Origin: Heterodontus francisci
Taxonomy: Eukaryota
DNA length: 64,000 bases
Direction of reading: 5' to 3'
Assembly: GCF_036365525.1 (NCBI RefSeq)
Contig: NC_090384.1
Span: 55,177,895-55,241,894 of the forward strand
In this document: positions 23,692 through 61,245 of the stretch, piece by piece
Layout: each line of letters opens with the position of its first letter
Position numbering within the stretch: position 1 is the stretch's first letter
Notes under the pieces: generated by a model
The model's input: only the letters and a program-made list of their open reading frames with translations
Databases searched by the model: none
What the model was told of the DNA's origin: nothing
Program-made: the position numbers and the translations under genes

Positions 23692-23999
23692 CTAAACCTT
23701 CACAGTGTACGTCTTCTCCACAATATCATTGGTTTTTGTGTGTCGAACTTCACAAGTGTATTCTGCTGAGCCTGCAGCAATGATGATAGGTAGTTTTGTA
23801 ACTGTAGAGTAAAGTCCCTTGGCATCAATTTTGGGCGTTTCTATGCTTTGTTTATCTTTCTGTTCCGTCCATCCCTTGCTCCAAATAACATGCATGTCCG
23901 CTGGACAAAAATGTTCAATGATGCAAGTAAGAGTAGCTTTTTCACCCTTTTTGGGATGAGCAGGGTCACACTTGATTTCTGATACTTTGGGAGGCACAG
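23692..23999 (-). CDS. NCR3LG1: Post-TM C1-type Ig domain 6, last coding exon, ends at TAG
   Basis: Acceptor ttttcacag|CT GTG CCT. Motifs LTCIIEHFCP..VIWSK..GLYST..EYTCEVRH. TAG at 23694-23692; minus-strand AATAAA at 23626-23621. Confidence 0.85.
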
Positions 24000-24759
24000 C
24001 TGTGAAAATGCAGGAACAAAATGAAATTCTCAAAAATATGAACTCCAATCAGACTCCTAAAACAAGAATTTTTGAATGGGTTCAAGAGTTCAAAAGCTTT
24101 TCAGTAACTGCTCAAGTTGAATATTTGAAATTCTAAAAAATGGTATAACCTGTTTATACTAAGTAATTTCCTCTGAACAAATGCCACAAGTGCTTCTTTC
24201 TTCAACTAACAGCCTGTATTTTGCTGTATTACTAACAGCGAGGCTGTCGGTACTTGCCATTATTACTGGGTAAAACTCAGCAATTTCTGGCATCCGCACA
24301 TGTCCAGTTAAACAGCGAAATGAGGAAGATGCTGTTAGTGATATCTTACCCCTCCGCAGGCTACACTGTTGTAGTCTCTTCCAATGGAATGTACACAGAA
24401 ATCACTGTCATGGCATAAATTTGAGCTAATTACCCATTATTCTCACTTTGAAAATGGATGAAAAAGTTGGCTTGTTCTATCAGGAGTAACAGAATTTTTA
24501 ACGGCAGAGTGTGGTAATCATTGCTGAACAACCTCTTTGACCCTGAAAAAATAATTTGACACGTGGACTCTCATTCCCTAAGAAAATTAATGTTGCAGAT
24601 TTTTTTTTTAATGTATAAAGTTTTCTTGTTTTGCTCTTCTATGTACTTTTAATCCCGTGTTTCTGTCCCAATCTTTATTTTGCTTCTTGTGCAATGATTT
24701 AAATGTGGATTATATTTCCTTTTTTTGCTGGATCTGGTGCTGGGAGACTGAAGTGGGCC

Positions 24760-26960
24760 AGGTGGACCAAGTATGGAGGAATGCTTGGGTATGGGCAATT
24801 ATATCATAGGGTTTAGATTAACAATGGAGAAGAGCAAGGAACAATCTGAAGTAGAATGTCTAAACTGTAAGAGGGCTAAATTCAATGGGATGAAAGGGGA
24901 TCGTGCCAGGGTAAAATTGAACCAAAGATTGGCAGGAAAAATTGGAATAGAACAATGGGTTATCTTTGAGGATATGTTTCAGGTACCGCTAGATATTTTC
25001 CAACAAGGGCAAAAGGTAAGGAAATCAAAGCCAGGGCTCCTTGGATGATGAGGGAAATAGAGAATATAGTGAAACAAAAAAAGGTGGTATATGATACATG
25101 TCAGGTGCATTTTTCAAGCGAGAACCAGGCCAAATACACTAAGTTGAGAGAGGAAAATACAACTGGCAAAGAGAGAATACGAGAGCAGAATGGCTGTTAA
25201 CATAAAAGGGAACCCAAAAATCTTCGACTGGCATGTAAATAGTAAGTGGGGCAGGGCCTATTAAGGATAAAGAGGATGATATATGCCTAGAGGCGCAAAG
25301 CAAGTCTATACTTTATATTGGTGTTTACTATGGAAGACTATGCTGACAAAATATTAGTAAAATCAGAGATTATAGAGGTAATGGATGAGGTGAAAATTGA
25401 TAGGCAGGATGCACTAGAAAGGTTGGCGATGTTTCAAGTAGATAAGTCACCTGGTCTGGATGTCTTGCATCCCTTGCCATAATCTTCCAATCTTCCCCAG
25501 AAACGGCAGGAGGTGGTCCAGAGGATTGGAGGGTGATAAATGTGACACGCTTATTCAAGAAACGATGCAAGGACATTCCTAGTAACTACAGGCCTGTCAG
25601 TTTAACATCTGTGGTGGGTAAGGTTTTAGAAACAATAATCAGAGGAAAGAAATCAACTGGCACTTGGAGAGCTTTGAGTTAATTAGGGAGAGCCAGCATG
25701 GATTTGTAAAAGGCAGATTGTGTTTGACTAATCTAATTGATTTTTTTGATGTAGTAACAGAGAAGGTTGATGAAGGGAATGCAATGGATGTTGTCTATAT
25801 GGATTTTTAAAAAGCCTTTGATGAAGTACTACATAAAAACACTAGTTACCAAAATTGAAGCTGATGGAATAGGAGGCTCGGTCTTGATTTGGGAAAAAAA
25901 TAGCTTAAGGACACAAAACAGCCAGTTGTGGTAAATGGTTATTTTTCAGACTGGAGGACGGTAGACAACAGTATTCTCTAAGGTTCAGTGCTAGGACTAC
26001 TGCTTTTTTGCTATATATAAATGGCTTGGATAGTGGAATACAGAGTACATTTCAAAATTTGCCAATGATACCAAACTTACAGGTGTGGCATATAGTGAGG
26101 ATGATAGCAATCAACTGCAACAGGACACAGGTAGGCTAGCAGAAAGGGCAGACAATTGGCAGATGGAATTTAATACAGAGAAATGTGAGGCGATAAGGAC
26201 AGGCAATAGAGACTAAATGGTACAGTTCTAAAGAGAGTGTATAAGGACAGAGAGACCAGCGGGGTATTCATGTGCAAAAGATGTTTAAAGGTGGCAGCAT
26301 ATATTGAGAGAATAGTGAGCAAAGCATATGGGATCTGGGCTTTCATAAATAAGGGTATTGAGTACAAAGGCAGGGAGGTCATGCTGAACATTTATAAAGC
26401 TCTGGTTCAGCCACAACTAGCGTACTGCATCCAGTTCTGGTCAACACACTTTAGGAAGGATGTGAGGGCCCTTGAGTGGGCGCAGAAGCGAATTACTAGA
26501 ATGGTTCCAGGGATGAGGGATTTTAGCTACAAGGTTAGGTTGGAGAAGCTGGGGTTATTTTCCTTGGAGCAAAGGCGATTGAGGAAAGATTTAATAGGTG
26601 TACAAAATTCTGACAGGTTTGGATAGGGTACACAAGAAAAAGCTATTCCCATTAACTGAAGGTACTAGGACTAGGGGACACAGACTGAAGGTTTTGGGCA
26701 GGAGATGAAGGGGTATGTGAGGAAGAGCTTTTTTTTTTAAAAAACGCAGCGAGTGATTATGACCTGGAACTCGCTACCTACGAGGATGGTGAAAGCAGAG
26801 ACAATAAATGATTTCAGAAAGGAAATTGGATGGCCACTTGAGGGAAATAAACTCTCAAGGCTGCAGGGATCAAGCCACTGAATGGGATTGGTTTGCTCTG
26901 CAGAGAGCTACTATGGACTCGATGGGCCAAATGGCCTCTTTCTGTGCTGTTATGATTACT
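24760..26960 (+). mobile_element. Degraded CR1 LINE (ORF2 RT region to 3' UTR)
   Basis: Frameshifted RT motifs (NYRPVSLTS, FANDTK), C-terminal YKALVQPQLAYCIQFWS..LEKLGLFSLEQRRLR, and a CR1 3' end. Confidence 0.85.
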
Positions 26961-26967
26961 TCCTTCT

Positions 26968-26992
26968 TTGGTGTGTGTGTGTGTGTGTGTGT
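26968..26992. repeat. (GT)n microsatellite
   Basis: Read directly. Confidence 0.9.
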
Positions 26993-27303
26993 ATATATCA
27001 GGAAAGAATCTTCATTGGTTGAAGAGCCTCCCTGCTACTTGGCCTGCTCAGATTCCACCGATCCCCTGCAGAAGGTGCCCATTTCAAATGCCATTGGATG
27101 AGAGGAAATCTCTGCTGACAAACCTGCTAGAAGTCTGTGAGCAACTTTATAAGGTGAATGGCAAAAACTGTTCCTTCGCCAATCTCAGCAAAATATGGGC
27201 CATTATCTCCAGTGCTGTACTATGCATATATTTTAAATGGAATTTGTCAGTTAAACCTGCCTTTTAAAACATATTTAAACAGCAGTGCATGAGATACACC
27301 TAC

Positions 27304-27615
27304 CTTTGAGAGGCAGCTGAATATGTCTTTTGAATACATCACATTTGTAATTGTCTTTATACTGAAAGATTAACTCTCTTTCAAAGTCTTCTGCAGTCAC
27401 TAAAAAATTCAGACAACTGTCTATCCAGTAAGTGTTTCCATGGGCAAGCACAGGCTGTGAATTTGTCACTCCATCTTTAATGTGCTCAGATGCTTTATAC
27501 CAGTCAACTGCAATATCTGTATGGGAAATTCCACACACTGAATAGGACACAGATAAATGTTTGCCGTACAAAGGGTTCTCTGGTTCCATTTTGAAATCTG
27601 AAAATATGGGTGAGC
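27304..27615 (-). CDS. NCR3LG1: Post-TM degenerate C1-type Ig domain 5 (312 nt, phase 1-1); both canonical Cys replaced
   Basis: Acceptor tgtttatag|GC TCA CCC, donor AAA G|gtaggt. EPENPLYGKHLSVSYSV..IAVDWYK..GNTYWIDS..ELIFQY has the same spacing as domains 3 and 4. Confidence 0.78.
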
Positions 27616-27769
27616 CTATAAACATATAGAAAACGATGCAGTTAATAAATGCAAAAGGCCAAATTAAGCCACATCCTATCTGTCAGGAATTTTATTCATT
27701 CATTCTTTGGATATGCGCATCACTGGTAAGACCATTTGTTCCCCACCTCTACTCACCCTCTAGAAGGTG

Positions 27770-30700
27770 ATAAACTGCAGCATGCCCAATCGACCCTGCA
27801 AAGTCCTCCTCATTGACATCTAGGGAGTTGTGCCAAAATTGGGAGAGCTGTCCCAGACTAGTCAAGCAACAGCCTGACAGTCATACTCACCAAATCATGC
27901 TTTACAGTCAGCTTCCCAGACTCTTCCATCACCATCCCTGGGTATGTCCTGTCTCACTGTCAGGATAGACCCACCAGAGGTTGGTATGCAGAGAGGAGGG
28001 AGTGACCCTGGGAGACCTCAACATTGATTGCAGACCCCATGAATGTCACATTGCATCCGGTCAAACACAGGCAAGGAAACCTCCTTTTGATTACATCTAC
28101 AGCCCTCCCTCAGCTGATGTATCAGTGTTCTTCCATGTTGAACACCTCTTGGAAGAAGCACAAAGGGTAGCAAGGGCACAAAATGTTCTCTGGGCAAGGG
28201 GCTTAAATGTACATCACCAAAGAGTGGCTCGGTAATAAAGGTCGGCTACCTGACCCGAACCCGACGGGACAGGTTCAGGTTGGGTCGCACCTCCGGGTCC
28301 GGCATTCGGGATCAGGTCAAGCCAGGTTGAACACGCTCTGTCACCACCTCCGGTAAGTGGCTCCAATGTTAATGTACTTTTTGGACTTGAAAGGTAGTTT
28401 TGTTATTTATTTTAAGCTTGTGCAGATAAGCAACAAGATGAAAAATGGAAGGTAGGTTAACTGATGATCGGGTCAGGCGAGGGAAAAAAATGATAGGGCT
28501 AGGGCTCGGGGTCCGATGTGGTTCTGTCGGGCTCAGGTCGGGTTTCATTTACAGACCCGAGCCGGGCTTTACTCGGTAACACCTCAACTGACCAAGCTAC
28601 CTGAAGGACATATCTGCCAGACTGGGCCTGTGGCAGGTTTTGAAAGAATCAAGAGGAAAAAAAAGTTACTTGACCGAGTTCTCACCAGTCTACCCATCCT
28701 CAGTGTTGTGTGGCACTACCATGGTGGTAAATGGGATAGACTCAAGACAGATATAGCAGCTCAAAACTGGGTATCCATGAGGTGATTTGCGCCATCAATA
28801 GCAGCAGAATTATATTCAACCACAATCCTCAGGGTAGTGTCCTAGTCCCAACTATCTTCAGCCGCTTCATCGATGACCTTCCTTCAATCATAAGGTCAGA
28901 AGTGGGGATGTACGCCGATGATTGCACAATGTTCAGCACCATTCATGACTCCTCAAATACTGAAGCAGTCCTTGTAGAAATGCAGCAAGACCTGGACAAT
29001 ATCCAGGCTTGGGCTGATAAGTGGCAAGTAACATTTGTGCCACACAAGTACCACACAATGAACAACTCCAACAAGAGAGAATCTAACCATCTCCCCATGA
29101 CATTCAATGGCATTACCATCGCTGAATCCCCCACTATCAACATCCTAGGGGCTACCATTGACCAGAAACTGAACTGGAGTAGCCATATAAATACTGTGGC
29201 TACAAGAGCAGGTCAGAGGCTAGGAATCCTGCGCCAAGTAACTCACCTCCTGACTCCCCAATGCCTGTCCACCATTTACAAGGCACAAGTCAGGAGTGTG
29301 ATGGAATACTCTCCACTTGCCTGGATGGGTGCAGCTCCAACAACATTCAAGAAGCTGGACACCATCCAGGACAAAGCAGCCCACTTGATTGGCACACCGT
29401 CCGACGCACAGTGGCAGCAGTGCGTACCATCTACAAGATGCACTGCAGCAATGCACCAAGGCTCCTTAGACAGCACCTTCCAAACCCGCGACCTCTATCA
29501 CCTCGAAGGACAAGAGTAGCAGATGCATGGGACCATCACCACCTGCAAGTTCCCAACCAAGTCACACACCAACCTGAATTGGAACTATATCGCCGTTCCT
29601 TCACTGTCGCTGGGTCAAAATCCTGGAACTCCCTTCCTAACAGCACTGTGAGTGTACCTACCCCACATGGACTGCAGCAGTTCAAGAAGGCAGCTCACCA
29701 CCACCTTCTCAAGGGCAATTAGGGATGGGCAATAAATGCTGGCCTAGCCAGTGAAGCCCACATCCCATGAATGAATTAAAAAAAATATATATAAATCTAT
29801 AACCTAATGGCCCAGCATATCACCCTATCATTATAATCAAGCCAAGGAACTAACACTGGTTCAATGAGGAGTGTAGGACAGCATGCCAGAAGCAGCATCA
29901 GGAATATCTAAAAATGAGGTGCAAACCTAGTAAAGCTACAGAACAGGACTATATGCGTGCTGAAACAGCGAAAGTAGCATGCTATAGACTGAGCCAAGCA
30001 ATTCCACAACCAACAGACCAGGTCAAAACTCTGCAGTCCTGCTACTGGAGTCTTGAATTGTGGTGGACAATGAAACAACTAACCAAAGGAGGCTCCAAAA
30101 ACATTCCTGTCCTCAATGATGGGGGAGCCCAGAATGTCAGTGCAAAAGACAAAGCTGAAGCATTTGCAACCATCTTTAGCTAGAAATACCGAGTGGATGA
30201 TCCACCTCGGCTTCCTCCTAAAGTTCTCAACATCATAGATGCCAATCTTCAGCCAATTCGATTCACTCCATGTGATATCAAGAAACGGCTGAAGGTATTG
30301 GATACAGCAAGGACTAAGGGACCTTGACAACACCTGTGCTCCCAAAATAGCCATGCCCTTAGCCAAGCAGTTCGAACACAGCTACAACACTGGCATCTAC
30401 CCGATAATGAGGAAAATGGCCCACAAAAAGCTGGACAAATCCAATCCAGCCTTTTATCGCCCCATCAGTCTACTCTAAGTCATCAACAAAGTGACGGAAG
30501 GTGTTGTCGACAGTACTAAATCAGCAACAACCTGCTCACCGATGCTCAGTTTGGGTTCTGCCACAGCCATTTAGCTCTAGACTTCATAAGAGTTTGTCCA
30601 AAGATGGGCAAAAGAGCAGAATTCCAGAGGTGAGGGAGAGTGACAGCAACTGACATCAAGGCAGCACTTGACTGAGTATGGCATGAAGGAGCCCTAGTAA

Positions 30701-31700: not shown

Positions 31701-31705
31701 GTATT

Positions 31706-33002: not shown

Positions 33003-33329
33003 CTTTAAGAAATAGCTGGAAACATTGTTTAAAAGGTTTGGTTGAAGATTTGGAATGACAAACTTCAACTCTATACTCAGCTTGATGATCATCAGTACTT
33101 GGAGTCAAAGTTACTGTGGTGACTTTGTTGTGCAGACCATTTTCACAGAATGATTCTTCCATAACGTTTTCATACTTTGCAGCCTCGCTCATTCTCACTT
33201 CATTTCTGAACCATTCAACTTGAATATCCTCTGGATAGAAGTCTCTTATATTACAGGTTAAAATCAATTCCTTCCCTTGTTCAGGGGTGGCAGGATTGCA
33301 GGTAATTTCAGACACATTAGGGAAAGATA
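33003..33329 (-). CDS. NCR3LG1: Post-TM C1-type Ig domain 4 (327 nt, phase 1-1); F-strand Cys replaced
   Basis: Acceptor ttttatttcag|TA TCT TTC, donor AAA G|gtgggt. Motifs LTCNIRDFYPEDIQVEWFRN..AEYRVEVCH. Confidence 0.85.
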
Positions 33330-33654: not shown

Positions 33655-36600
33655 CATAGAGCCACAGTCATTTACAGTACAGAAGGAGGCCATTCAGCTC
33701 ATCAAATCCATGCCGGCTCTCCACAGATGAATCCAGTCATCCCACTCCCCCACTCGATCCCCATAGCCTTGCAATTTGTTTCCTTCAAGTGTCCATCTGC
33801 TTCCACTACCCCTGTGGGCAGTGAGTTCCAGGTCATTACCACACACTACATAAAAAAAGTTCTTCCTCACATTCCTCCTGCATCTCTTGCCCAAAACCTT
33901 CAATCTGTCTCCCCTAGTTGTTGTACTTTCAGTTAATGGAAAGAGCTTTCCTTGTCTAACTTATGTTAACTTGTCTAACTTGCCTGTCATAATCTTGTAC
34001 ACCTCTATCAAATCTCCCCTCAATCTCCTTTGAACTAGGGAGAACCACCCCAGCTTCTCCAACTTGACCTTGTAACTAAAATCCCCCATCCCTGGAACCA
34101 TTCTGGTAAATCTCCTCCGCACACTCTCAAGGATCCTCCCAAGTTAAAGTATGGTGACCAGAACTGGACGTTATGCTCTATTTGGGGCCTAACCTGAGCT
34201 TTCTAGAGGTTCAGCATAACGTCCCTGCTTTGTACTGTATGCCTTTATTTATTCATCAAAAGTTTTCCTAAAATCCATATAGACACTGCATTTCCTTCAT
34301 CTCGGTTAATCATCAAAAAAAATTCAATTGGTAAAGCATGATCTGCCTTTTACAAATCTGTGCTGGCTATCTTTAATTAATTCAAAACTCTCCAAGTGCC
34401 TGTTGATTTTTCCCTGATTGTTTCTAAAACCTTATCCACCACTGATGTTAAATTAACTGGCCTGTAGACACTGGGACCGTCCTTACACCCTTTCTTGAAT
34501 AAGGGTGTTGCATTTGCCACTCTCCAATCCTCTGTCACCTTCCCTATTATCTCGGGAAGACTGTAAGATTATAGCAATCCCTTCAGCTATCTCCACCCCC
34601 ACTTCTTTTAGCAACCTGAAATGCAAGCCACCCAGACCAGGTGATGTATCTACCCTAAGCATAGCCAACCTTTCCAGTACCTCCTCACTCTCAAATTTTT
34701 TACTCTATCCATTGCCTCTACTCTCTCCATTTCTACCGATATTTTGTCAGATTCCTCTTCCTTAATAAACATAGAAAAATAGGAGTAGGCCCTTCGAGCT
34801 GCTCCGCCATTCAATACGATCATGGCTGATCATCCAAACTCAGTAACCTGTTCCCACTTTCTCCCCCTATCCCTTGATCTCATTAGCCCCAAGTACTATA
34901 TTAGAATTAGAACATTACAGCGCAGTACAGGCCCTTCGGCCCTCGATGTTGCGCCGACCTGTGAAACCATCTGACCTACACTATTCCATTTTCATCCATA
35001 TGTCTATTCAATGACCACTTAAATGCCCTTAAAGTTGGCGAGTCTACTACTGTTGCAGGCAGGGCGTTCCACGCCCCTACTACTCTCTGAGTAAAGAAAC
35101 TACCTCTGACATCTGTCCTATATCTATCACCCCTCAACTTAAAGCTATGTCCCCTCGTGTTTGCCATCACCATCCGAGGAAAAAGACTCTCACTATCCAC
35201 CCTATCTAACCCTCTGATTATCTTATATGTCTCTATTAAGTCACCTCTCCTCCTCCTTCTCTCCAACGAAAACAACCTCAGGTCCCTCAGCCTTTCCTCG
35301 TAAGACCTTCCCTCCATACCAGGCAACATCCTAGTAAATCTCCTCTGCACCCTTTCCATAGCTTCCACATCCTTCCTATAATGCGGTGACCAGAACTGCA
35401 CGCAATACTCCAGGTGCGGTCTCAAGAGTATATCTAACTCTTTCTTGAATACATTTGATTTTTTGGCCTCAACTGCTTTCTGTGGTAGAGAATTCCACAG
35501 GTTCACCACTCTCTGGGTGAAGAAATCTCTCATCTCAGTCCTAAATGGCTTACCCCTTATCGTCAGACTGTGACCCCTGGTCCTGGACTCCCTCACCGTC
35601 AGGAACATCCTTCCTGCATCGAGTCTGTCCAGTCTTGTTAGAATTTTGTACGTTTCTATGAGATCCTCTCTCATTCTTCTGAACTCTAGCGAATACAAGC
35701 CTAATCGACCCAATTTCTCTTCATACATCAGTCCTGCCATCCCAGGAACCTTCACTGCACTCCCTCCACAGCAAGAACATCCGTCGTCAGATAAGGAGAC
35801 CAAAACTGCACACAATACTCTAGATGTGGTCTCACCAAGGCCTTGTATAATTGCAGCAAGATATCCTTGCTCCTGTACTCTAATCCTCTCGCTATGAAGG
35901 CCAACATACCACTTGCCTTCTTAACTGCCTGTTGCACCTGCATGCTTACTTTCAGCGACTGGACACAAGGACACCCAGGTCTCGCTGCACCTCCCCCTTT
36001 CCCAATCTATCAGATAATAATCTGTCTCTGTTTTTGCCACCATAGTGGATAACCTCACATTTATCCACATTATGCTGCATCTGCCATATATTTGCCCACT
36101 CACTCAACCTATCCATATCACACTGGAGCTTCTCTGCATCCTCCTCACAGCTCACACTCCCACTCAGCTTGGTGTTGTCTACAAACTGGGATATATTACA
36201 TTTAATTCCTTCATCTATATCATTAGTATATATTGTGAATAGCTGGGGTCCTAGCACTGATCCCTGTGGTACCCCACTAGCCACTGCCTACCACTCGGAA
36301 AAAGACCCATTTATTCCTACTCTTTGTTTTCTGTCTGCCAACCAGTTCTCTATCCATGTCAGTAACTTACCCCCAATCCCATGTGCTTTAATTTTGCACG
36401 CTAATCTCTCATATGGGACCTTATCGAAAACCTATTGAAAGTCCAAATACACCACATCCACTGGTTCTCCCTTATCTATTCTACTAGTTACATCCTCAAA
36501 AAATTCCAGTAGATTTGCCAAGCATGATTTCCCTTTCGTAAATCCATGTTGACTTTGTCCGATCCTGTCATTGTTTTCCAAATGCTCTGCTATTACATCT

Positions 36601-39600
36601 TTTATAATGGACTCTAGCATTTTCCCCACTACTGATGTCAGGCTAACTGGTTTATAATTCCCTGTTTACTCTCGATCTCATTTTTTAAATAGTGGGGTTA
36701 CATTAGCTATCCTCCAATCCATTGGAACTGTACCAGAGTCTACAGAATTTTGAAAAATGACCAGCAATGCATCTATTATTTCTAGGGCCACTTCCTTAAG
36801 TACTCTGGGATGTAGATTATCAGGCCCTGGGGATTTATCAGCCTTCAATCCCATCAATTTCCCTAACACCATTTCCCCACTAATACTGATTTCATACAGT
36901 TCCTCCTTCTCACTAGACCCTATGTTCCCCAACATTTCTGGGAGGTAATTTGTGTCCTCCTTTGTGAAGACAGAACCAAAGTATGTATTTAATTGGTCTG
37001 CCATTTCTTTGTTCCCCATTATAAATTCCCCCGTTTCTGACTCTAAGGGACCCATGTTTGTCTTCACTAATCTTTTTCTCTTCACATATCTGTAGAAGCT
37101 TTTACAGTCAGTTTTTATGTTCTCTGTAAGCTTACTCTCATACTTTATTTTTCCCTTCTTAATCAATCCCTTTGTCCTCCTTTACTGAATTCTAAACTGC
37201 TCCCAATCCTCAGGTTTGCTGCTTGTTCTGGCCATTTTATATTTCTCCTCCTTAGATCTAATACTATCCCTAATTTCTTTTGTAAGCCACAGTTGAGCCA
37301 CCCTTTCCATTTTTTTTTTGCGCCAGACAGGAATGAACAATTGTTGTAATTCATTCATGAGCTCTGTTTGGGGGTCTATATATAACCCCCACCAACGTTT
37401 TCTGCCCCTTGGTGTTTCTTAGCTCCACCCATACAGATTCTCTGAGCAAATATCCTTCCTCACTACTGTACTGATTTCCTCACTGATACAAAGTGCTCAT
37501 TAAGTATTCTAGCCTTGCCCTATGCCTCTAAGCATATATTACCCTTTTTGTCCCTAATAGACCCCACTTCACCTTACTATTTACATGTCGATAGAAGATT
37601 TTTAGGTTCCCTTTTATGTTGACTGCCATTCTGTTCGCATATTCTCTCTTTGCCAGTCTTATTTTCTTCTTCACCTCCCCTCTCAACTTATTGTATTTGG
37701 CCTGGTTCTCACTTGAAGAATCAACCTGGCATGCATCATACACCCTTTTTTTTGTTTCATTATAACTCTACCTCCATCATTCAAGGAGCCCTGTTTTTGG
37801 TTCCCCTACCTTTTGCCCTTGTTGGAACATACCTAGCCTGTACCCGAAGTATCTCCCTTAAAGATAACTCATTGTTCTATTATAGTTTTGCCTATCAGCG
37901 TTTGATTCCATTTTATTCTGGATACATCCCTTCTGATTGCATTAATGTCCTTCAGGGAAGGAAATCCGCTGTCCTCACCTGGACATGCATCTCCAGATCC
38001 ATAGCGAAGCTGTTGACTTTTAACTGCCCTCTGAAACGGCCTAGCAAGCCACTCAGTTGTATCAAATCACTACAGAAAAGTTGAAAAGGAATAACACCAG
38101 ACGGATCATCTGGCATCGACTTGGGCACCAGAAATTACAATGGCACACGCAATCCTGCAATCCTTACTAATATCTGGGAGCCGGTGCCAAAATTGGGGGA
38201 GCTATCCCACAGACTGGTCAAGCAACAGTCATACTCACAGAATCATACCTTGCAGCCAATGTCCCGGACACCGGGATCACCATCACAATCCCTAGATATG
38301 TCCTGTCCCACTGGCAGGACAGATCCAACAGAAACGGTGGCACAGTGGCATACAGATGGGAGGGAGCTGCAAGGAAACCTCCTACTGGTTACTACCTACT
38401 GCCCTCCTTCAGCTGATGAATCAGTACTCCTCCATGTCGAACACTGCATGGAGGAAGCACTGAGGGTGGCAAGGTCACAGAATGTACTCTGGGTGAGGGA
38501 CTTCAATGTCATCGCCAAGAGTGGCTTGATAGCACCACTACTGACTGAGCTAGCCAAGTCCCGAAGGACATATCTGCCAGACTGGGCCCACGGCAGGTGG
38601 TGAGGGAACCAACAAGAGGGAAAAACCTACCAGATCTGGTCCTCATCAATATACCCGATGCATACATCTGTCCACGACAGTAGTTGTAAGAGTGCCCACC
38701 ACACATTCCTTGAGAAGACGGAGTCCTGTCTTCCCACTGAACATACCCTCCATCATGTTGTGTGGCACTACCACAGTGCTAAATAGGCTAGATTCAGAGC
38801 AGATCTAGTAGCTCAAAACTGAGCATCAATGAGGCGTTGTGGGCCATCAGCAGCAGCAGGATTTGACATTTCAGAAGGAGTGGAAGCTAGGAAAAGGTAT
38901 GGGGTAACTCTGTTAATTAAGGGTGATATTAACACAGTAAAGAGAGATGCTCTCAGTTCAAAGTATCAAGATATAGAATCAGTTTGTGTCGAGATAAGAA
39001 ATTGCAAAGGAATGAAGTCACTTGTGGGAGTAGTTTAAAAGGCCCCCTAATCGTAGCTACACTGTAGAACAGAGTATACACGAAGAAATAATGGGGGCTT
39101 TTAAGAAAGGTACTGAAATAATCAGAGGTGATTTTAATCTACATAAAGAATCAGATTGGCAAAGACCGCCTGGAAGATGAGTTCATAGAGTGCATTCCCA
39201 ACAATTTCTTACAGCAGTACATTTTAGTGCCAACCAGGGAGCAGGCCATTCTAGACCTGGTAATGTGCAATGAGACAGGATTAATGAATGACCTCATAGT
39301 AAAGGAGCCTCTAGGCAATACGAATCATAACATGATAGAATTTCACCTTCAGTTTGAGGGTGAGAAGTGTGGATCTAAGACTAGCGTTTCAAACTTAAAT
39401 AAAGGCAACTGCAAGAATATGAAGACTTAGTCAGCCAAAGTGAACTGGCAAATCAAATGATAAGGATAGGACAGTAGAGAAGCAGTAGCAGACATTAAAG
39501 GAGATATTTCATAACTTTCAAAGATATATTCCAGTGAGAAAGAAAGACTGTAGAAGGATGCGCCATCCGTGGCTAACTAAGGAAGTTAATACAGTATCAA

Positions 39601-45851: not shown

Positions 45852-46163
45852 CTAAATTCTCAGGAATATATTCTGCAAACCTTGGATACACAAGACTCTC
45901 ATGATGAACCTGGCATTTATATCTACTCTGTAGGTCTGATAATGCTGGAATAATTGTACATGAACTGGTAAGTTCATACAACTCATTATCAGGATTTTGA
46001 ACTATTTCAGATGTTTCAGCATCCTTAATAATGTCTTGATTTTTCAACCATTGGACAGTAATATTTTGAGGATAAAATGAATGCACTTTGCAGTTCAGAG
46101 TCAACTCTTTTCCAATTACAGGGTTCACTGGTTCACTGAAGATGGCATTAAGAGAAGGAAAAG
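45852..46163 (-). CDS. NCR3LG1: Post-TM C1-type Ig domain 3 (312 nt, phase 1-1)
   Basis: Acceptor cttattttatag|CT TTT CCT (AFPSLNAIFSEPVNPVIGK), donor TTA G|gtacgt. Motifs LNCKVHSFYP..WLKN..YKCQVHHESL. Confidence 0.85.
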
Positions 46164-46661: not shown

Positions 46662-47024
46662 CTTTTACTTCTAGTTGAACCTGTTGCACTGCTGGATTTC
46701 TCAAACCAATGTGTTCAACTTCACAGGAATATTCACTGTTATCATCTTCTCGGATCGTCGCATTAAAGAGCAACATGCTGCAGACGCTGTATGTGTGGTC
46801 AGGATAACTAAACTTGCTCATGCTATGGGAATATTTGTCCGAATAAATATTTTTTTCAGCTTCATTCTTGTGCATCAGCAAACGACGTTTGGATCCATTC
46901 ATTCGTTTATACCATGTGATCGTTAAAGGACGTGGCTTGAAAAAATTTATCGGACAAGTCAGGATCACTGAATTGTTATGATGGACGATAGGAGGTGTAA
47001 TTATGTTAGCCAATTTAGGAGGAA
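46662..47024 (-). CDS. NCR3LG1: Post-TM C1-type Ig domain 2 (363 nt, phase 1-1)
   Basis: Acceptor cccctctag|TT CCT CCT, donor AAA G|gtaagc. Motifs LTCPINFFKP..ITWYK..DHTYSVCS..EYSCEVEH. Confidence 0.85.
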
Positions 47025-50000: not shown

Positions 50001-51055
50001 GTAAATCAGCGAAGAAAACTACTGCTTTTCTACAATAAGCTTCTGTCAATGCTTGGAAGAGTTGAAGAACATATCTGTAGAAAAAGAAAAATCTATCTAT
50101 CCCACAAATTATGAATTAAACATCATACCATCCCTACCACAAAAATAACACTTCTACAATAGCAAAACCACTCAAACATCCTATATTATAACAGAACCTG
50201 TACAATTACTGCCCTCTTATGGTGATATCTGATGCTTTTGTACTGCCAAGGGGCAGATATTTTGCAAAGAATTTCTTCAACAGTGATATTACAAAGGGAG
50301 AATACTTCTATCTTCATTCGTGTCATTACCAGAAAAACATCTTATAATGTTACGGATGGAAGAAATTCTACAAAACAATGTGTCTGCAAGCCACAAATAC
50401 ACTCTGAACTATGAAGCAACCTTGTTTTATACCATTTGTATGCGGCAACTTTCCATAAGGACCTTCCTTTAGTCTGCATTCAGTTCTCTGCTGGATTGTT
50501 GTAATTTCCTCCCATTCCCTCTGCATTCTTTCCCAACCTAGTTTTAGCCCCGATGTGTTCTCATCTATTGATGCTATTTGAACATTTCAATGTGACTGTG
50601 CCCTCTATTTTCCCTTTCACTTTCCTGCAGCTTTTTTCCTAAACCAGTAACCATATCATTTAAAAGCACTCAGATGGAGTTATAGATGGTGAATTTTACT
50701 ACAATGAATATAATTTTAACTAAGTTATCTATGAGAGGGCGGCAAACTTTGTCAAGAGGCCCATTCTCACATCTCACTGATACCTCATGGCAATGTTCAA
50801 CCACAGAAGTACAAATTTGTGAATTTCTCTTGGATGGAGCTGGTGGTATATTATACTGTTTAATGAATGCTGTGAGAATTACCATAAAGAACTAATTTTA
50901 CAACACAAAAAAGGCAGTTTTAGGCTACATGATTTGGGATTGCAACACTTAATGACTATAATCACAATATGGCAATGGAGACTGGATATGTGATCAAGCT
51001 GAACACATTCTACTTAACAGAATAATGATTTTTGATTGACTTATAAAAAGCTTAC

Positions 51056-51478
51056 TTCCATCAACTTGCAAATGGATCCTTCTGCAAATGCCTTCACTGA
51101 CAGATGGATGCATCACTTTACATATGACTTCTGCATTATTGTCCTCATTGATGTCAGGATAAACCTCAAGAATGCTAGAAATGCTGGATGTTCCATCATC
51201 ATTTTTCTGGAAACTGCCTAGCTTGACTTTCCATTCGCTGTCAGTTTCAGTCCTTCCGACAGCGCATTCTGTTTCCCTGTTCTTGCTGAAAGGGAAATGA
51301 AACATGTAGGCTTGTTGCCATTCAGCAATCAACTTCACTTCAGTGTCCTTCCGTCTCTTCAAATGCCAGCTGACAGTAATAATTTGAGGTCGGAATCCAG
51401 ACACTTGGCATATAAACTCTGCAGGTTCTTGGTGTACAATTCTAGCAGGTATTTGAATGTCTGACACTTTTGGTACAA
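51056..51478 (-). CDS. NCR3LG1: Post-TM C1-type Ig domain 1 (423 nt, phase 1-1), with a long insertion after the C-strand Trp
   Basis: Acceptor ttttattcccag|TT GTA CCA, donor GGA A|gtaagc. Motifs FICQVSGFRP..VSW..KNDDGT..VICKVMH. Confidence 0.85.
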
Positions 51479-52420
51479 CTGGGAATAAAAAAAAGAGAAA
51501 TTTCAAGATGAATTGATTCAAATGATCTTTGACACTAGCTGAAAATTCCTATCAGTTGTCTTGTCTTCATTGATTGTGAAATACTAGCAGTTGATTTAAT
51601 TCTCACATTTAATATTCACCATCTAGACTACCCAAAAGGCACTTTAAAAATTATAAGCACTAGCAGAACTCCTACAGTCAGATAAGGGATTTAGTCACCA
51701 TTAAGTAAACTCTATTTTAGGCTCTAAATTTAAAAGTAATCATGCATATTTAAATTCAATTAATCTGGCATGAGCTTGGATAAATTGATTAGTGGAGGGG
51801 AAGATTGTCGCTAGCTGCGAGATACAACAATATTGCAACATTTTTATGAAGAACAGAGTTACAATTTTACTACACCTAGTGCATGTAGGACATCTCCTAT
51901 GGTAATTTACCAATTCAGAGTTTACGGGAAGGTAGCGATCAAGTAAACAGATGAACACAAAAATGTACCAAGTGCAAAATGGAACTGAGCAAAAAGAAAA
52001 CTCTCAAAGTGTGGGATTGCAACAAGTCAGGGTCAACAATGGTTAACAGTGCAGTTCAAAATATTAGAAGTTTAGCAATGAGTCATAAAGTTATTACAGT
52101 ACAGAAGGAGGCCTTTTGACCAATTGAGTCCATGCTGGCTCTCCATAGAGGAATCCAATCAGTCCCATTCCCCTTTTCTATCCCCCTAGCCCTCTAAGTT
52201 TATTTCCTCAAGTCCCCATCCAATATCCTTTTGCAATCATATATTGTCTCCACTGCCACCACCCTCGTAGGCAGAGTGTTCCAGGTCATTACCATTCTCT
52301 GGGTAAAAGGTTCTTCCTCACATCCCCCCTGTATCTCTTGCCCAAAATCTTAAATCTGTGTCACCTAGTTCTTGTACCATCATCTAATGAGAACCGCTTT
52401 TCTTTGTCTACCCTATCTAA

Positions 52421-52748
52421 GGCGGCACAGTGGCACAGTGCTTAGCAACGCAGCCTCACAGCTCCAGGGACCCGGGTTCAATTCTGGGTACTGCCTGTGC
52501 AGAGTTTGCAAGTTCTCCCTGTGACCGCGTGGGTTTTCGCCGGGTGCTCCGGTTTCCTCCCACCACCAAAGACTTGCAGGTGGTAGGTAAATTGGCCATT
52601 GTAAATTGCCCCTAGTGTGGGTAGGTGGTAGGGAATATGGGATTACTGTAGGGCTAGTATAAATGAGTGGTTCTTGGTCGGCACAGACTCGGTGGGCCGA
52701 AGGGCCTGGTTCAGTGCTGTATCTCTAAGTAAATAAATAATAAATAAA
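52421..52748 (+). mobile_element. V-SINE (HE1-like) inserted into a CR1 3' fragment
   Basis: Same head and V-domain with a (TAAA)n tail; CR1 sequence continues on both sides (about 52085-53110). Confidence 0.88.
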
Positions 52749-53533
52749 CCTGTCATAATCTTGTACACCTCTATCAAATCTCTTCTCAATCTCCTTTGCT
52801 CCAAGTAGAACAAACGTAGCTTTTCCAATCTAACCTCGTAGCTAAATTTCCTCACCCTTGCAACCATTTTGGTAAATCTCCTCTGCAACCTCTCAACGAC
52901 CCTCACAGCCTTCCTAAAGTGTGGTGACCAGGACTGGATGAAATACTCTAGTTGTGGTCTAACCAGAGCTTTATAAATATTCAACATAACCTCCCTGCTT
53001 TTGTACTCAATGCCGCTATTTATGAAGCCCAAGATCCCATATGCTTTGTTAACTACTCTCTCAATATGTCCTGCCACCTTCAAAAGATCTATACACATGA
53101 ATCCCCAGAAGTGGAAAAAGAGGATAACAAAAAAGAGAGCAACTGAAAAGACTGCTAGACAGAGGGGACTTGGGTAATGGAATGCAGAAGAAATCGCAAA
53201 ATAGAACAGAACTTTTTTTTTTAAAAAAAAAGAGCACGTGGGAAATGACAAAATAATGATGTATCTGCATTCCAAGCCTATGGAATGGTTTCAAGCCACC
53301 AGAGTACCTGCACATCAACTTGAAGCTGTGCTTTCCAATGGAGTCACTGTGGAAAACACAAAATGTTCTCTAACTCATGTTTTTGGTACAGCTCAGCAGA
53401 TACAAAGACCCTACTTGAGGACCCTTATGTTAGCGAAAAAATTACATTTTGGAAATAATTAGAAATAAATTGAAAGTAAGCTCCTCACTCCTTTTTTGAG
53501 ATGTAGAGTAGTTTGAATCAACGATTAGTCCCT

Positions 53534-53667
53534 TTACAGTTTCCTTCCCTTCTTCACCCGCCCACTGACAATAAATTCCAGAATATACTCAGTAAAGTGG
53601 TACCAGATCAAAGATTGAAGTATAGTAAGAGAGTATAAAAGATCGGAGTAACAGTAGCGTTCTGTAG
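53534..53667 (-). CDS. Candidate alternative terminal cytoplasmic exon: ATERYCYSDLLYSLTILQSLIWYHFTEYILEFIVSGRVKKGRKL*
   Basis: Strong acceptor ttttctctttgcag about 400 nt after the TM exon; open in phase 1 for 44 residues to TAA. No transcript evidence. Confidence 0.3.
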
Positions 53668-54061
53668 CTGCAAAGAGAAAATCATTAAGGAGTTAATGAA
53701 GGTAAAACAAAGATGCTAAGCAGAAAATTATCCATCAAAATGCAAAATACTTGATGGCTAAACATTTCATATGTCATTTACATCTCAATTAAACACTCTT
53801 GTTTGCACACTAATCATTTCTGTTTAATAACAATTGATTGGTACTGCTAAAACCTGAAGCAAAAAAATTAAACAATTGTAACAAGTTTGAAGAAGCACTG
53901 GTTAACCAGCGGATACAAGAATTTGCTATAACAGCAGCAACAATGTGACACATTGCACAGTCTCTTGTCCCCCACACACCCCCATAACCCAAGTTTCCTT
54001 TGAGTCATTTTACTCCAAGTTTATTCCATAATTCGTCTGAACACCCAGAATATAGATTTAC

Positions 54062-54178
54062 CTTTGTAATAGAACCGCATATAGAGGAAAATTCCTAGTA
54101 TGATCAATGCAATAGAAATAATAATGCTTGTAATCACGCTTCCAACTATTGATCCTCTGGCCAGACGAATTTGTGCTT
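54062..54178 (-). CDS. NCR3LG1: B7-H6-like transmembrane exon (117 nt, phase 1-1): EAQIRLARGSIVGSVITSIIISIALIILGIFLYMRFYYK
   Basis: Acceptor ttttcttttacag|AA GCA, donor AAA G|gtaaat. In frame with both flanking exons; about 23 uncharged hydrophobic residues followed by basic residues. Translated by hand; not in the ORF track. Confidence 0.85.
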
Positions 54179-54339
54179 CTGTAAAAGAAAATTTACATAT
54201 TTCTCATACTGGATTTTTAAAAATAATTCTACAACTCATTAGTGCAAAAATGTGCAATCTCAAAGTACGGTCGAGAAATACTTAAGCATTTGTTTTCACA
54301 CCTGAACATATATTGTTTGCAACCCAGTTTTGCTACTTG

Positions 54340-55310
54340 GCAAACTGGTTATTGATAAGGCAAAATGCAGTGTTCCACAAGGATCAGTGCTGGGACCACT
54401 ATTATTTGTAATTTACATTAATGTTTAGGAATAAATAACTCACTATCAAAATTTGCAAACAATACCAAACTGGAGAGTGGGTATAACAAACACTGAGGAA
54501 GAATGCAACATAATGAGAAGACATTAGAAAATTTGCAGACCAGGTAGTAAAGTGGCAAATAATCTTTATCGTCAATAAATGTGAGGTACACTCTGGTCGG
54601 AAAGATCAGTAATGTCACCTATACCTTAAAAATATGTTTTAAAAAACTGAATGGAGTACAAGTGCCAAGAGATCTAGGGATACAGATGAGCAAATCATTA
54701 AAAACAACATTGCAACAAAGCCATTAAAAATGCCAGAAAAATTCATTTATTTATAGGGGTATAAAATGTGTTAAACTTGTATAGGAACCTAGTCAGGCTA
54801 CACTTGAAGCACCATGCACAGTTCTGGTCTCCTATGAGAAGGTCACAGAAGCACTGGAGAAAGTTCTGGTACCATCCTGTTTTACACTATGAGATCACAG
54901 CTATTAGGAAAAGATTAAATAGAGTGGGACCTTTTCCTTTGGAAAAGAGGAGATTTAGAGGGCTTTAAAATTACAAATGGGTTGGATAAGGTAGAAATGG
55001 AGAGAATATTTCCATTGGTGGGAGAATTCAAAACTGAGGGCCATAAATGCAAGATAGTTACTAATAAATTCAACAAGGATATGAGAAACTTCTTTACTTC
55101 GGAGAGTGGTTAGTATGAGGAACTCGCTATCAGAGGAAGTGACTGTGGCAACTTAGATGGTTTTAAAAGCAAACTAGTCAAGTCCACTAAAGTAAAGGGA
55201 ATAACAAAGGCTGAGATGAGACGAGGAGATTTGTGTGTGGTTATGAACACTAGCAGACTAATTGGGCCAAATGGCCTGTTTCTGTCCTGTATATTCTATG
55301 TAATTCTGTG
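54340..55310 (+). mobile_element. Old CR1 fragment in the C1-TM intron
   Basis: VPQGSVLGP, FANNTK and LYRNLVRLHL..QFWSP remnants, then a CR1 3' end. Confidence 0.65.
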
Positions 55311-55889
55311 TAAAAATCGTAGTCAAGTTTGGAACCAGGTCTATGCGGAACAATGGTCATAGGCTAATTTTCCACTAAGAAGGTTTGTTAATGGAATGAA
55401 GTGAAAAATTATTAAACAAACTATAAATCACCTTTCAAAAGCCAAGAAAATTATCAAGACGCACATGAAGGTCAGAACTGGAAGTTTGGTAAGGAAAATG
55501 TGTCCAGGTTATTGGATGGAACAACCTGGTACTTAAAAATGTGAATCCACAGATTCGAAAAAGCTCCCACAAAATGCTCAAAACCGTAGCAAAATAAGAG
55601 TTATTAATCACAATACACATGTATTCTAATTTATTTTCAACTGTAGGAAGAAGTTAAGAGTTTTTTTATTAACATCAATTTAAAATGTTTTGTAAAAATA
55701 CATTAAAAGTTCAAAAGGCCTTTGCCTGTCACCATCAAACTAATCCATACAAAAGCTTCATATTTAATTGTTTCCCCAATAAAAGTTGAAACTGCAATAC
55801 ATTAGTTAAAACTGAAGTGTTTTTCAATATGAACTTAACCAAAATGTTTTATACTTTGCATTTTAAAAGCTAAAACCACCACAACTGAC

Positions 55890-56216
55890 CTTTCACAGTC
55901 ACTGAAGCATTCACAGAGAATGGCTCTGAAAAAGTCCTGTGCGTGACACGGCATTCAAAAGTGCTGCCCATGTCTTCTATATGAGGTTCCAATCTAACTT
56001 CAGTGGTTACATTACATGTTCCATCAGGGTTTTTGACTGGCGGAGCAATGCAAATGTCAGTTAACAACTTTGTTTCTCTTCGTGATGGAGTTGACTGAAA
56101 CCATTCAGCATTGCTCTCGCAAGGATAATATCTGCTTAACTGACAACCCAAGACCATCTCTCCACCAGTGCCAACTTCCACAATTTTTTCCGAAAGCACA
56201 GTTACAGTGGGACGTG
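55890..56216 (-). CDS. NCR3LG1: B7-H6-like extracellular C1-set domain exon (327 nt, phase 1-1)
   Basis: Acceptor ttttggcag|CA CGT CCC, donor AAA G|gtcagt. CQLSRYYP..W..PPVKNPDGTCNVT..EDMGSTFECRVTH resembles B7-H6 C1 (CESSGFYP..PTIKNMDGTFNVT..EDPGTVYQCVVRH, recalled). Confidence 0.88.
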
Positions 56217-56363
56217 CTGCCAAAATAAACAGGTAGGTTAACATTAATAACAGTGGCTATTCGTCAAACGTAATGCATTGGATTGGATCTGTGCATATTA
56301 AAAGAAATTAGTGAATGGCTGAAGCACTATTAGATATACATAAAAATATTAGTAAAAGGCAAT

Positions 56364-58611: not shown

Positions 58612-58868
58612 TGATTTATTTTTTAATAAAAACAAGAAATGCTGGAACTACTCAGCAGGTCTGGCAGCATCTGTGGAAAGAGAAGCAGAGTTAACATTTC
58701 GGGTCAGTGACCCTTCTTTGGAACATTTCCGAAGAAGGGTCAATGACCCGAAACGTTAACTCTGCTTCTCTTTCCACAGATGCTGCCAGACCTGCCGAGT
58801 GGTTCCAGCATTTGTTTTTATTTCAGATTTCCAGCATCCGCAGTATTTTGCTTTGATTTATTTTTAAT
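58612..58868. repeat. Penelope-type inverted terminal repeat (about 100-bp hairpin arms) with about 15-bp direct flanks
   Basis: aaaaacaagaaatgctggaac..gacccttctt / aagaagggtc..ccagcatttgtttt; tgatttattttt(t)aat on both sides. Confidence 0.75.
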
Positions 58869-59464
58869 GTTTCTTTCATCCCACTATTAGAATTTGGACA
58901 ATATCAAGCAGAGAGTAGTGCGAATATTGGACAGGATTTATTGTTATTACTATTTTTTTTTTTATCGGATCAGCTGTAGTGTGCCAGAAGGATCAGATGA
59001 TCACGGTGTGCAAATGAAGGTAAAAGACCGTTACAACCTCCTTCTACTTCTGATAGGATGAAAGCTGCAAGAATGTTTTACAAACTTTAATTTTAATGCT
59101 ACAGCACCTAATGGTCAGCTTCAACCAAGTACCTTATTCCCACTAACACAAGCACCTTACTGAATCAGCTAACTTTGATCAGTCCTATTGATAAATCAAC
59201 TGAATGAGGTTTTACTATACATTACACAAATAAACTGTTTCAAGATCTGAATGAGGATTGATAGTACAGGTGGCAACTTCTACACATGTACTACTGGATC
59301 ATTATTAAAAGTACACTAATCAGGTCAGAAAGCATTAGACACTAAGTGCAAACCATTTTTTTAAACAATCAGCTCTGAGGAAAGGACATCAACCTGAAAC
59401 TTTTACTCTATTTCTCTCACCACAGATTCTGCCTGACCTGCTGAGTGTTTCCAGCATTTTCCAT

Positions 59465-60350
59465 TGTTACGATCAGGTGAGAAAGGGTTCCCTCTCAGTC
59501 TTCACCTGGTCTTACCGTAATAGGGTTTAATATTAAACACACCTTTTCTTTTTAGCTCCCCCTTAGTGAATCCTTGTTCACTAACCTCCAAAGTAAAGAA
59601 ACTAGCTAAACAGGTTTTCTTAGGTTTAAAGAGAAATGGTTGAACTTTATTAAACTTAAACTATGATTTGGTTAATACCTACGGATATGCGACGTGCCCA
59701 CGTTAGCATGCATATGTGATACACACATGCAGATAGAGACAGAAAAGAGAAGAAATAAAGTGGAAAAGTTTGAGGCAATATCTGAAGATGGTTTTGGTTA
59801 CTGTTCTTCGAGCTTGCTGTAAAGTCCTTGATTGTAGGTAGATCTTGCTTTTCGTTGGGGCCCAGTATTCTTCTTAAACCTTGTTCGATGCAGGAGACTT
59901 TTCTCTCTTGAAGTTCGTGTGTCCTCAATAGGTTCAGAGGCTTGTGAGAAACAGATGGGAACAGATAGGAGAGGTCTTCTCACTCCAGGTGCAAACAGTC
60001 TTTCTGAGTTCAAAAACTCTGGCTAGCTCAAAAAACCCTGGACCAGTTAATCATGTGACCATCTGGTTTAACCAGTTCTGGCTTTTGTGGATTGTATTAC
60101 CTTAGCAGTCTTCGGAATGCTCTTCCTTACAGCTTCAATGTCTGGTGAGCAAAATCCACTGTGGGTTGAATGTGTCAGGAAATGGTCCTTTGTCTCCACA
60201 AGCACTGTGTTAGTATGCAAATGTTTTTCAGCTAAATGTCTGGCAGCCCTTGTAACAGGCCTTCTCTTCTTCCCAGCAACAGTTTAAAATCAATGTTCAT
60301 GACAAAATTAATATGCCTCATTCTTGGAAGGTGGGGGGGCCTGCATGACA
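59465..60350. mobile_element. Solo LTR family A inserted into a Penelope-type repeat fragment
   Basis: TGTTACG...CATGACA; the host repeat (ccagcattttc...tatttcagatttctagcatctgcag) resumes after it. Confidence 0.72.
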
Positions 60351-60390
60351 ATTTCTATTTCAGATTTCTAGCATCTGCAGTATATTGATT

Positions 60391-60749
60391 AGATTTAGAT
60401 TAAGATTAGATTAGAGATACAGCACTGAAACAGGCCCTTCGGCCCACCGAGTCTGTGCCGAACATCAACCACCCATTTATACTAATCCTACACTAATCCC
60501 ATATTCCTGCCAAACATCCCCACCTGTCCCGATATTTCCCTACCACCTACCTATACTAGTGACAATTTATAATGGCCAATTTACCTATCAACCTGCAAGT
60601 CTTTTGGCTTGTGGGAGGAAACCGGAGCACCCGGAGAAAACCCACGCAGACACAGGGAGAACTTGCAAACTCCACACAGGCAGTACCCGGAATCGAACCC
60701 GGGTCCCTGGAGCTGTGAGGCTGCGGTGCTAACCACTGCGCCACTGTGC
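60391..60749 (-). mobile_element. V-SINE (HE1-like)
   Basis: Near-identical to 32151-32510; (CTAAT)n tail. Confidence 0.88.
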
Positions 60750-60900
60750 TTTTATATTTAAGGGCAGTTCCTTTGCAAGATTATGTTTCTAAAAGCTATT
60801 TTCATAGAAAGACAAACTGTTTTAATATATGAATGCTGATGGCATTGTGTTACACTGCAAAGTATAATAATTTACAGTAACTGTACATAAATCAACTTAC

Positions 60901-61245
60901 CTAAAACCTCAAGCTTTATCGTCTTAGATGCCTTATCATTTGGTGGAATAAAAACTTCACATTGATAATGTCCACTGTGTTTAATTGTGACACTTTTTAG
61001 CAACAGTGACATGTTTCCATTCAGAATGGAGCTTTCTGACAGCTCAGCTTCTTTCCATGGTTTAGATATTACTCCATTAGTGTAGATAAAGACTTTTTTT
61101 TCAGTGCCAAAAGACCATAAAACGCCCAAGTTCCCTGCGTCCAGTGTAGACCCAGCAAGTTCAGCAATTTCGCACTGCAAAAGTCCATTTCCATTAAACA
61201 TTACTTCCACAGGACTTTGACTCACATTCAACTCCAACTTGCCTT
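60901..61245 (-). CDS. NCR3LG1: B7-H6/NCR3LG1-like gene, V-set Ig domain exon (345 nt, phase 1-1)
   Basis: Acceptor ctgcag|AA GGC AAG TTG, donor TTA G|gtaagt. V-set Cys/Trp/YxC; LGVLW..EKKVF and SGHYQCEVFIPPNDKASKTIKLEVL resemble human B7-H6 (MGITW..[29 protein letters not shown], recalled). Convergent with KCNJ11 as in human. Confidence 0.85.

Follow-up and report, generated by a model that had tools for sequence, protein, structure and literature searches.

The 64,000-nt stretch of horn shark (Heterodontus francisci) DNA analyzed here, referred to below as the window, is taken from contig NC_090384.1 (positions 55,177,895 to 55,241,894). Its minus strand carries a gene for a membrane protein that consists of a V-set and a C1-set immunoglobulin (Ig) domain, one transmembrane (TM) segment, and then six further C1-set domains, which form a tail of ~680 aa running to the C-terminus. 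The gene appears to belong with B7-H6 (NCR3LG1) by its ectodomain, its locus, and automated naming, and its tail is ancient and constrained. Taking the evidence jointly, we consider it probable that the product is a type I protein at the B7-H6 position with the V and first C1 domains outside the cell and the six-C1 array in the cytosol, where the array would serve as a docking or oligomerization platform.

Nine exons of the gene (E1 to E9) lie in the window. Each is preceded by a polypyrimidine tract and AG, is open in phase 1, and is followed by a GT donor, mostly AAG/GTAAG-like. E1 (60901-61245, 345 nt; Pfam V-set, 5e-9) encodes the V-set domain and E2 (55890-56216, 327 nt; Pfam C1-set and splice sites) the membrane-proximal C1-set domain, which together make up the ectodomain. 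E3 (54062-54178, 117 nt) was recognized by hydropathy as the single TM segment, with a basic flank on its C-side. The tail starts with E4 (51056-51478, 423 nt; Pfam C1-set), whose domain D3 holds a long variable insert, and continues with D4 in E5 (46662-47024, 363 nt; splice sites and Pfam C1-set), D5 in E6 (45852-46163, 312 nt; Pfam C1-set, 2e-16), D6 in E7 (33003-33329, 327 nt; Pfam C1-set), which is without the F-strand cysteine, and D7 in E8 (27304-27615, 312 nt; Pfam C1-set), in which both canonical cysteines are replaced, by Tyr and Phe. E9 (23692-23999, 308 nt; Pfam C1-set) encodes the final domain, D8, and ends in the stop codon TAG (23694-23692). The introns are up to 12.5 kb long and rich in retroelements, and the leader exon lies beyond the end of the window.

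Pfam assigned E1 to V-set and the seven exons E2 and E4-E9 to C1-set with scores of 28.5-60.6 bits (cut-off 21), and C1-set was the best Pfam match of every tail domain. The C1-set hallmarks FxP, W, and CxVxH were retained, and P50, W62, and H234 are conserved columns of the family profile. When the family C1 profile was compared with the six-frame translation of the window, it returned exactly these seven exons and no further C1 exon. E3 contained the only strongly hydrophobic stretch, with a Kyte-Doolittle mean of 2.77 over 19 residues against 0.97 or less in every other exon. The 2,045 nt of the tail contained no stop codon or frameshift.

The spliced gene model is already public, though unnamed: NCBI RefSeq holds a H. 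francisci model of 965 aa (P0162) named ‘uncharacterized protein’. The nine exon translations matched P0162 in order and with 100% identity, with a gap of one residue at each split codon. E1 corresponded to residues 23-136 of P0162, which also supplies a hydrophobic, signal-like leader of 22 residues. The exons were searched singly, and the full-length analyses described below were done on P0162. P0162 and all of its orthologues terminate at D8 and have no later TM segment.

Since compatibility in phase 1 is generic to Ig superfamily exons, it is alone no proof that these exons are joined. In RNA contigs of 2981 nt (run X1) and 2892 nt (run X3), the segments 55890-56218, 54062-54178, and 51056-51478 were contiguous with 0 mismatches, and the stretches skipped between them start with GT and end with AG on the minus strand. 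X1 and X3 are two runs of one sample and were used as assembled contigs, not as reads; the comparison covered 50900-56300. Unique intron bins (e.g. 53434-53795) had zero depth in both runs, indicating that X1 and X3 behave like RNA, as opposed to DNA with a retrocopy. Past E4, the X1 contig continued for 1622 nt, which is exactly E5+E6+E7+E8+E9, and ahead of E2 it extended for 490 nt, which equals E1 plus ~145 nt of leader and 5ʹ untranslated region (UTR). The form containing the TM exon was the only transcript form assembled, with a contig depth of 127-166 and no contig break at the end of E2, and the transcripts passed from the TM exon to E4 without a leader-like exon. In runs X5 and X6, which are from organism B, only intronic repeats were covered and nothing on the gene. 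The original prediction, made from the letters of the sequence, had placed nine GT-AG exons in phase 1, a TM exon between Ig domains 2 and 3 with no second TM segment, and a junction from 54062 to 51478 that ties the tail to the TM exon. All of these were confirmed, down to coordinates, lengths, and splice sites, and the tail is not a separate gene, as it has no leader of its own and is continuous with the rest in the RefSeq model and all orthologues.

Two features were seen at the 3ʹ end of the gene. The stop codon TAG of E9 abuts GTATGT, which resembles a consensus donor (23686-23694, minus strand), and a candidate AATAAA polyadenylation signal was found by sequence 65 nt past the stop codon (23621-23626, minus strand). 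By its length, the X1 contig would end precisely at the stop; the X3 contig extends 28 nt beyond it. After the stop, some transcripts may either be spliced onward to a 3ʹ UTR exon or read through to AATAAA.

On which side of the membrane the tail lies was addressed with statistics on the family. Among the best 150 representatives, 85 had one internal TM segment followed by 1-14 C1 domains, and these 85 were used. The net charge over the 12 residues beside the TM core averaged +2.7 on the C-side vs -0.45 on the N-side; the C-side was the more positive one in 77/85 proteins and the N-side in 2/85. The density of N-x-S/T sequons per 100 aa was 1.28 before the TM segment (observed/expected 1.73) vs 0.66 after it (1.18), and it was higher before the TM segment in 73/85 proteins. 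In P0162, the ectodomain sequons N99 and N205 were kept in 17 and 16, respectively, of 24 aligned relatives, while no tail sequon was conserved outside chondrichthyans and one was kept in 10/13 chondrichthyan sequences. The tail sequons of P0162 include N442, N468, N513, N580, and N655.

The third signal came from cysteines. Of the 107 C1 domains before the TM segment, 92 (86%) had both the B- and the F-strand cysteine, vs 221 of 477 after it (46%; Fisher 1e-14), and in a paired test the fraction of domains with the pair was higher before the TM segment in 75/84 proteins. The cysteines lost from post-TM domains were replaced mostly by L, V, or I, and the core tryptophan was kept at ~90% on both sides of the membrane. 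As a control, C1 arrays located ahead of a C-terminal TM segment were taken from the same match list, and 36 of their 37 domains had the cysteine pair. D6 and D7 of the horn shark, as well as about half of the post-TM domains of the family, departed from the B-F disulfide that goes with C1-set domains at their usual extracellular or luminal sites. The F-strand position of D6 was V, I, or M in 24/24 aligned relatives (V in horn shark), the canonical positions of D7 were Y and F, and neither domain had a pair. Relaxed cysteines, fewer sequons, and a positive C-side flank agree with one another and point to a cytosolic array, as the original prediction had proposed. A separate observation is that the B-strand cysteine of D6 (P0162 residue 676, E7) was invariant in the 24 sequences even though its F-strand partner was absent in all of them; another cysteine lies nearby in horn shark (VEVCH).

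The tail is also predicted to fold. AlphaFold2 modeling of P0162 with the alignment of 24 sequences, an approach suggested at the outset for the tail, gave all eight Ig domains as folded, with a mean predicted local distance difference test score (pLDDT) of 83, and the tail blocks, which hold the six C1 domains, were mostly at 85-94. The two tail domains without a disulfide were also modeled confidently, D7 as a beta-sandwich, and the E4 insert (residues 343-358) was of low confidence. The model had a helix at residues 262-281, corresponding to the TM segment, and in agreement with the hydropathy of all exons it showed no second hydrophobic segment. At the membrane boundary, the 3ʹ end of E3 encodes the juxtamembrane sequence YMRFYYK (P0162 residues 279-285; YMRLYYK in Pristiophorus), a YxxPhi-like motif that is perhaps too near the bilayer to be a sorting signal.

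Several observations weigh against a cytosolic tail. The topology statistics pool related sequences, and their P values overstate independence; sequons after the TM segment exceed chance slightly (observed/expected 1.18). In the 24 sequences of the six-domain subfamily, which range from shark to alligator over ~450 million years, the cysteine pair was nearly invariant in D4, invariant in D5, and mostly retained in D8. This retention exceeds what core packing alone would lead us to expect, and it fits a compartment in which disulfides form. The RNA support comes from assembled contigs of a single sample, and minor isoforms may exist beside the form seen. In addition, RefSeq contains isoforms of three relatives that are minus the TM exon only (38, 37, and 31 residues lost, otherwise unchanged): the stingray Hemitrygon akajei (P0194, named ‘hemicentin-1-like’), the caecilian Microcaecilia unicolor (P0154), and a Heterodontus paralogue (P0158).

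These isoforms suggest a different reading, in which the C1 array functions extracellularly as part of an eight-Ig chain secreted through skipping of the TM cassette, and the TM form is a variant with a passive cytosolic tail. Because the 117 nt of E3 form a symmetric cassette (phase 1-1), skipping of E3 preserves the frame and gives a chain that is predicted to be secreted and to hold a single V domain with seven C1 domains. A chain of this kind would account for the cysteine pairs of D4 and D5, for those of D3 and D8, which are mostly intact in chondrichthyans, for the retained C1-set hallmarks, and for the one tail sequon kept among chondrichthyans. It does not sit well with the TM exon being part of the only transcript form assembled, or with P0162, for which no TM-less isoform is on record in RefSeq. 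The drop of sequon density to about chance past the TM segment, the absence of the disulfide pair from about half of the post-TM domains family-wide when extracellular controls keep nearly all of theirs, and the absence of the D6 F-strand cysteine from every aligned sequence also argue against it. We regard it as rather unlikely that the array works mainly outside the cell, while a secreted eight-Ig form may coexist in horn shark, possibly as a minor form.

The E4 translation was searched against 1.84 billion representative proteins and gave 193 matches, most of which were long multi-Ig proteins with the E4-like domain starting near residue 280-300. Searches recovered 13 further chondrichthyan orthologues, 941-974 aa in length, including those of Pristiophorus, Cetorhinus, Scyliorhinus, Mustelus, Chiloscyllium, Stegostoma, Pristis, Hypanus, Rhinoraja, Mobula, Narcine, and the chimaera Callorhinchus. 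Identity to the window exons, scored for 12 of the 13, was 43-85% per domain. In Callorhinchus it was 55% for V, 57% for C1, 50% for TM, and 45-60% for the six tail domains, indicating that the tail is as constrained as the ectodomain. A lungfish protein of 974 aa (P0019) aligned along the entire tail at 35%. The names sampled from the wider family cover sharks, rays, chimaera, bichirs, coelacanth, lungfish, frogs, salamanders, caecilian, and alligators, and nearly all of them are ‘uncharacterized’. Models of family genes are available for many species, Xenopus and alligator among them. A profile search of a word-indexed protein database, the reach of which is limited by its word prefilter, added only close orthologues.

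The age of the individual domains was estimated with a single-domain maximum-likelihood tree of eight species (shark, ray, chimaera, bichir, coelacanth, lungfish, newt, and alligator). The ectodomain C1, D3, D4, D5, D7, and D8 each formed one clade with support of 89-100, and D6 failed to form a clade solely through one long lungfish branch. From the clades of D3, D4, D5, D7, and D8, which extend from shark to alligator, we date no fewer than five of the six tail positions, and with them the multi-domain array, to before the divergence of cartilaginous and bony vertebrates. The C1 tail is thus ancestral in the family, and the same holds for the layout among jawed vertebrates.

Two further observations concern the history of the family. 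In most tail clades, lungfish P0019 grouped with the chondrichthyan orthologues, and alligator, newt, coelacanth, and bichir grouped together (P0211, P0014, P0021, P0035), which suggests two paralogue lineages that may predate the bony-vertebrate radiation. The chromosome of P0162 carries at least two further family genes (P0001, P0156-P0159, P0007, P0152), of which one encodes 792-797 aa with a tail of four domains and another ~1500 aa. In the ~1500-aa Heterodontus member and in Callorhinchus P0013, the post-TM domains are altogether without both canonical cysteines.

The same conservation makes it very improbable that the tail is a functionless relic, that is, phase-1 C1 exons shuffled behind the TM exon and translated for want of a stop. 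The reading frame tolerates insertion of any phase-1 Ig exon, the canonical cysteines are gone from several tail domains, and family members have anywhere from 1 to 14 tail domains, all of which a relic would explain. A relic would not, however, be expected to stay free of stops and frameshifts over its whole length, to be as similar to Callorhinchus as V and C1 are, or to keep 5/6 of its positions as distinct clades across jawed vertebrates; moreover, the tryptophan and other fold-defining residues of the tail are invariant, and AlphaFold2 folds it confidently. A false merger of two genes, or an assembly or annotation artefact, to which generic phase 1 and long introns full of retroelements could lend themselves, is effectively refuted by RNA contigs that span E2-TM-E4 with a remaining length of exactly E5-E9, by the transcripts having no leader-like exon ahead of E4, and by the same continuous architecture having been predicted independently in more than 25 species.

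The assignment to B7-H6 was examined from the ectodomain and the neighborhood of the gene. Among solved structures in the PDB, the best relative of E2 was the C domain of human NCR3LG1/B7-H6 (E 9e-10), with the next match at 4e-7. The V domain of E1 had best matches of B7 and CEACAM types, and in the PDB it matched CD276 at 1e-6 and B7-H6 at 1e-3, these being pairwise scores only. The elements of B7-H6, namely a signal peptide, a V-set domain, a C1-set domain, and a single TM segment, were all present by Pfam, hydropathy, and the leader of P0162. Adjacent to the gene, and convergent with it, the plus strand carries an intact single-exon open reading frame (ORF) of 399 aa for KCNJ11 (Kir6.2) at 3764-4963, which matched Kir6.2 (E 6e-178) better than Kir6.1. 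Human NCR3LG1 and KCNJ11 are likewise convergent, tail to tail. Furthermore, NCBI calls an alligator protein (P0211, 965 aa) and a Rhinophrynus protein (P0065), both of the same layout, ‘natural cytotoxicity triggering receptor 3 ligand 1’, and a family record of Polypterus is named NR3L1. The affinity to B7-H6 that had been proposed from the sequence was supported by the ectodomain C1 match, the KCNJ11 neighbor, and the NCBI names in alligator and Rhinophrynus.

Human B7-H6 shares with the horn shark protein the V-set and C1-set ectodomain, the single TM segment, and the position convergent with KCNJ11. It differs in its tail, which is short, Gag-related, and equipped with tyrosine motifs, in the place of six C1-set domains and ~680 aa in the shark protein. 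No Gag-related tail was present in the shark gene, and no Pfam family but C1-set matched its tail. The V domain of the shark also scores better with CD276/B7-H3, and the role of NKp30 ligand is assigned here by homology. The Gag-like tail appears to be mammalian rather than family-defining. With the C1 tail ancestral, it is the Gag-like tail of mammals that came in its place, and the human tail would accordingly be a late substitute for an ancient Ig tail. The original prediction had taken the B7-H6 tail to be an interchangeable module; as a correction, the C1 tail is the ancestral one and the Gag-like tail the replacement. The prediction had also presented the architecture as one of the shark. 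It occurs as well in bichirs, coelacanth, lungfish, amphibians, and alligators, and was present without a name in public models. We did not find a description in the literature of C1-set domains behind the TM segment in B7-H6 relatives, of which papers on B7H6 evolution may hold an earlier mention, and the layout has apparently never been characterized.

We compared the layout with other known systems. Butyrophilins (V-C-TM-B30.2, e.g. BTN3A1) likewise have a B7-related ectodomain, a single TM segment, and a beta-sandwich module that is putatively cytosolic in the shark protein; this is an analogy of working only, as the intracellular module of butyrophilins is PRY-SPRY/B30.2 and not Ig. Membership in butyrophilins was rejected because Pfam found no SPRY or PRY match in any exon or relative. 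In titin and obscurin, Ig folds in tandem function in the reducing cytosol although they do not have the canonical disulfide, and in a Foldseek search with the full P0162 model, which gave only generic multi-Ig arrays, titin I65-I70 was among the top matches. Their domains are, however, I-set, and they are soluble cytoskeletal proteins without a TM segment or ectodomain; a titin-type I-set array was rejected since the best Pfam match of each tail domain was C1-set.

UrIg2, IgW, and IgNAR of sharks resemble the gene in that a single V domain precedes many C1-set domains in a row, and a TM-skipped form would look like these. UrIg2 (PDB 9dmx) was among the PDB matches. In UrIg2, the TM segment is placed after all nine C domains, leaving the whole array extracellular (PMC12227049). 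Identity with UrIg2 or an Ig heavy chain was rejected, as the TM segment here separates Ig domain 2 from Ig domain 3, the V domain is of B7 type and not of VJ type, and the locus is different.

In the type I protein that we favor, cleavage of the signal peptide and a stop of transfer at the one TM helix would direct the V and C1 domains outward and leave the six C1 domains in the cytosol. The outer part would act, by homology, as a B7-type ligand of an NKp30-like receptor. Directly below the membrane, the tail would hang as a folded rod, and this rod may be a rigid docking or oligomerization platform that couples the cell interior to the display or clustering of the ligand, in parallel with the B30.2 domain of butyrophilins. 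By analogy with butyrophilins, we take such a platform to be the most likely role of the tail; a function as scaffold or sensor, in the wording of the original prediction, is speculation.

A wider version of this reading, which we put forward tentatively, is that ancestral B7-H6 ligands possessed both a cytosolic C1 array, acting as a sensor or scaffold that controls NKp30-type display, and a splice switch at the TM cassette, by which the same array is secreted as an antibody-like chain. If this were true, one gene and one Ig array would serve two opposite compartments. To our knowledge, C1-set domains are otherwise confined to Ig, T-cell receptor, major histocompatibility complex, and their partners outside the cell. 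A family with 1-14 C1 domains behind a membrane anchor would thus be a new use of the C1-set domain, with at least five of six tail domains of the subfamily of the horn shark gene maintained, each in its position, since before the split of shark and bony vertebrates. The ancestral NKp30-ligand system may also have had an intracellular arm comparable to that of butyrophilins.

The surroundings of the gene provided some additional observations. The KCNJ11 ORF lies in a GC-rich island, with 50-54% GC at 2-6 kb vs ~40% elsewhere in the window. Its last ~55 residues are a low-complexity extension rich in Pro, Glu, and Arg, which is unaligned to solved Kir6.2 chains (match to query residues 1-342). 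Reverse-transcriptase-like ORFs were found in the long introns at 28782-29519 (plus strand), 34976-35815 (minus), and 36678-37166 (minus). An intronic repeat with further ORFs of this kind is located at 52300-53100, 54339-54519, and 55244-55424 (e.g. ORF 52643-53275, minus strand). The summed contig depth on this repeat was up to ~9e5 in all four runs, organism B included, and the repeat at 52300-53100 looks like an abundant transcribed retroelement family common to different species.

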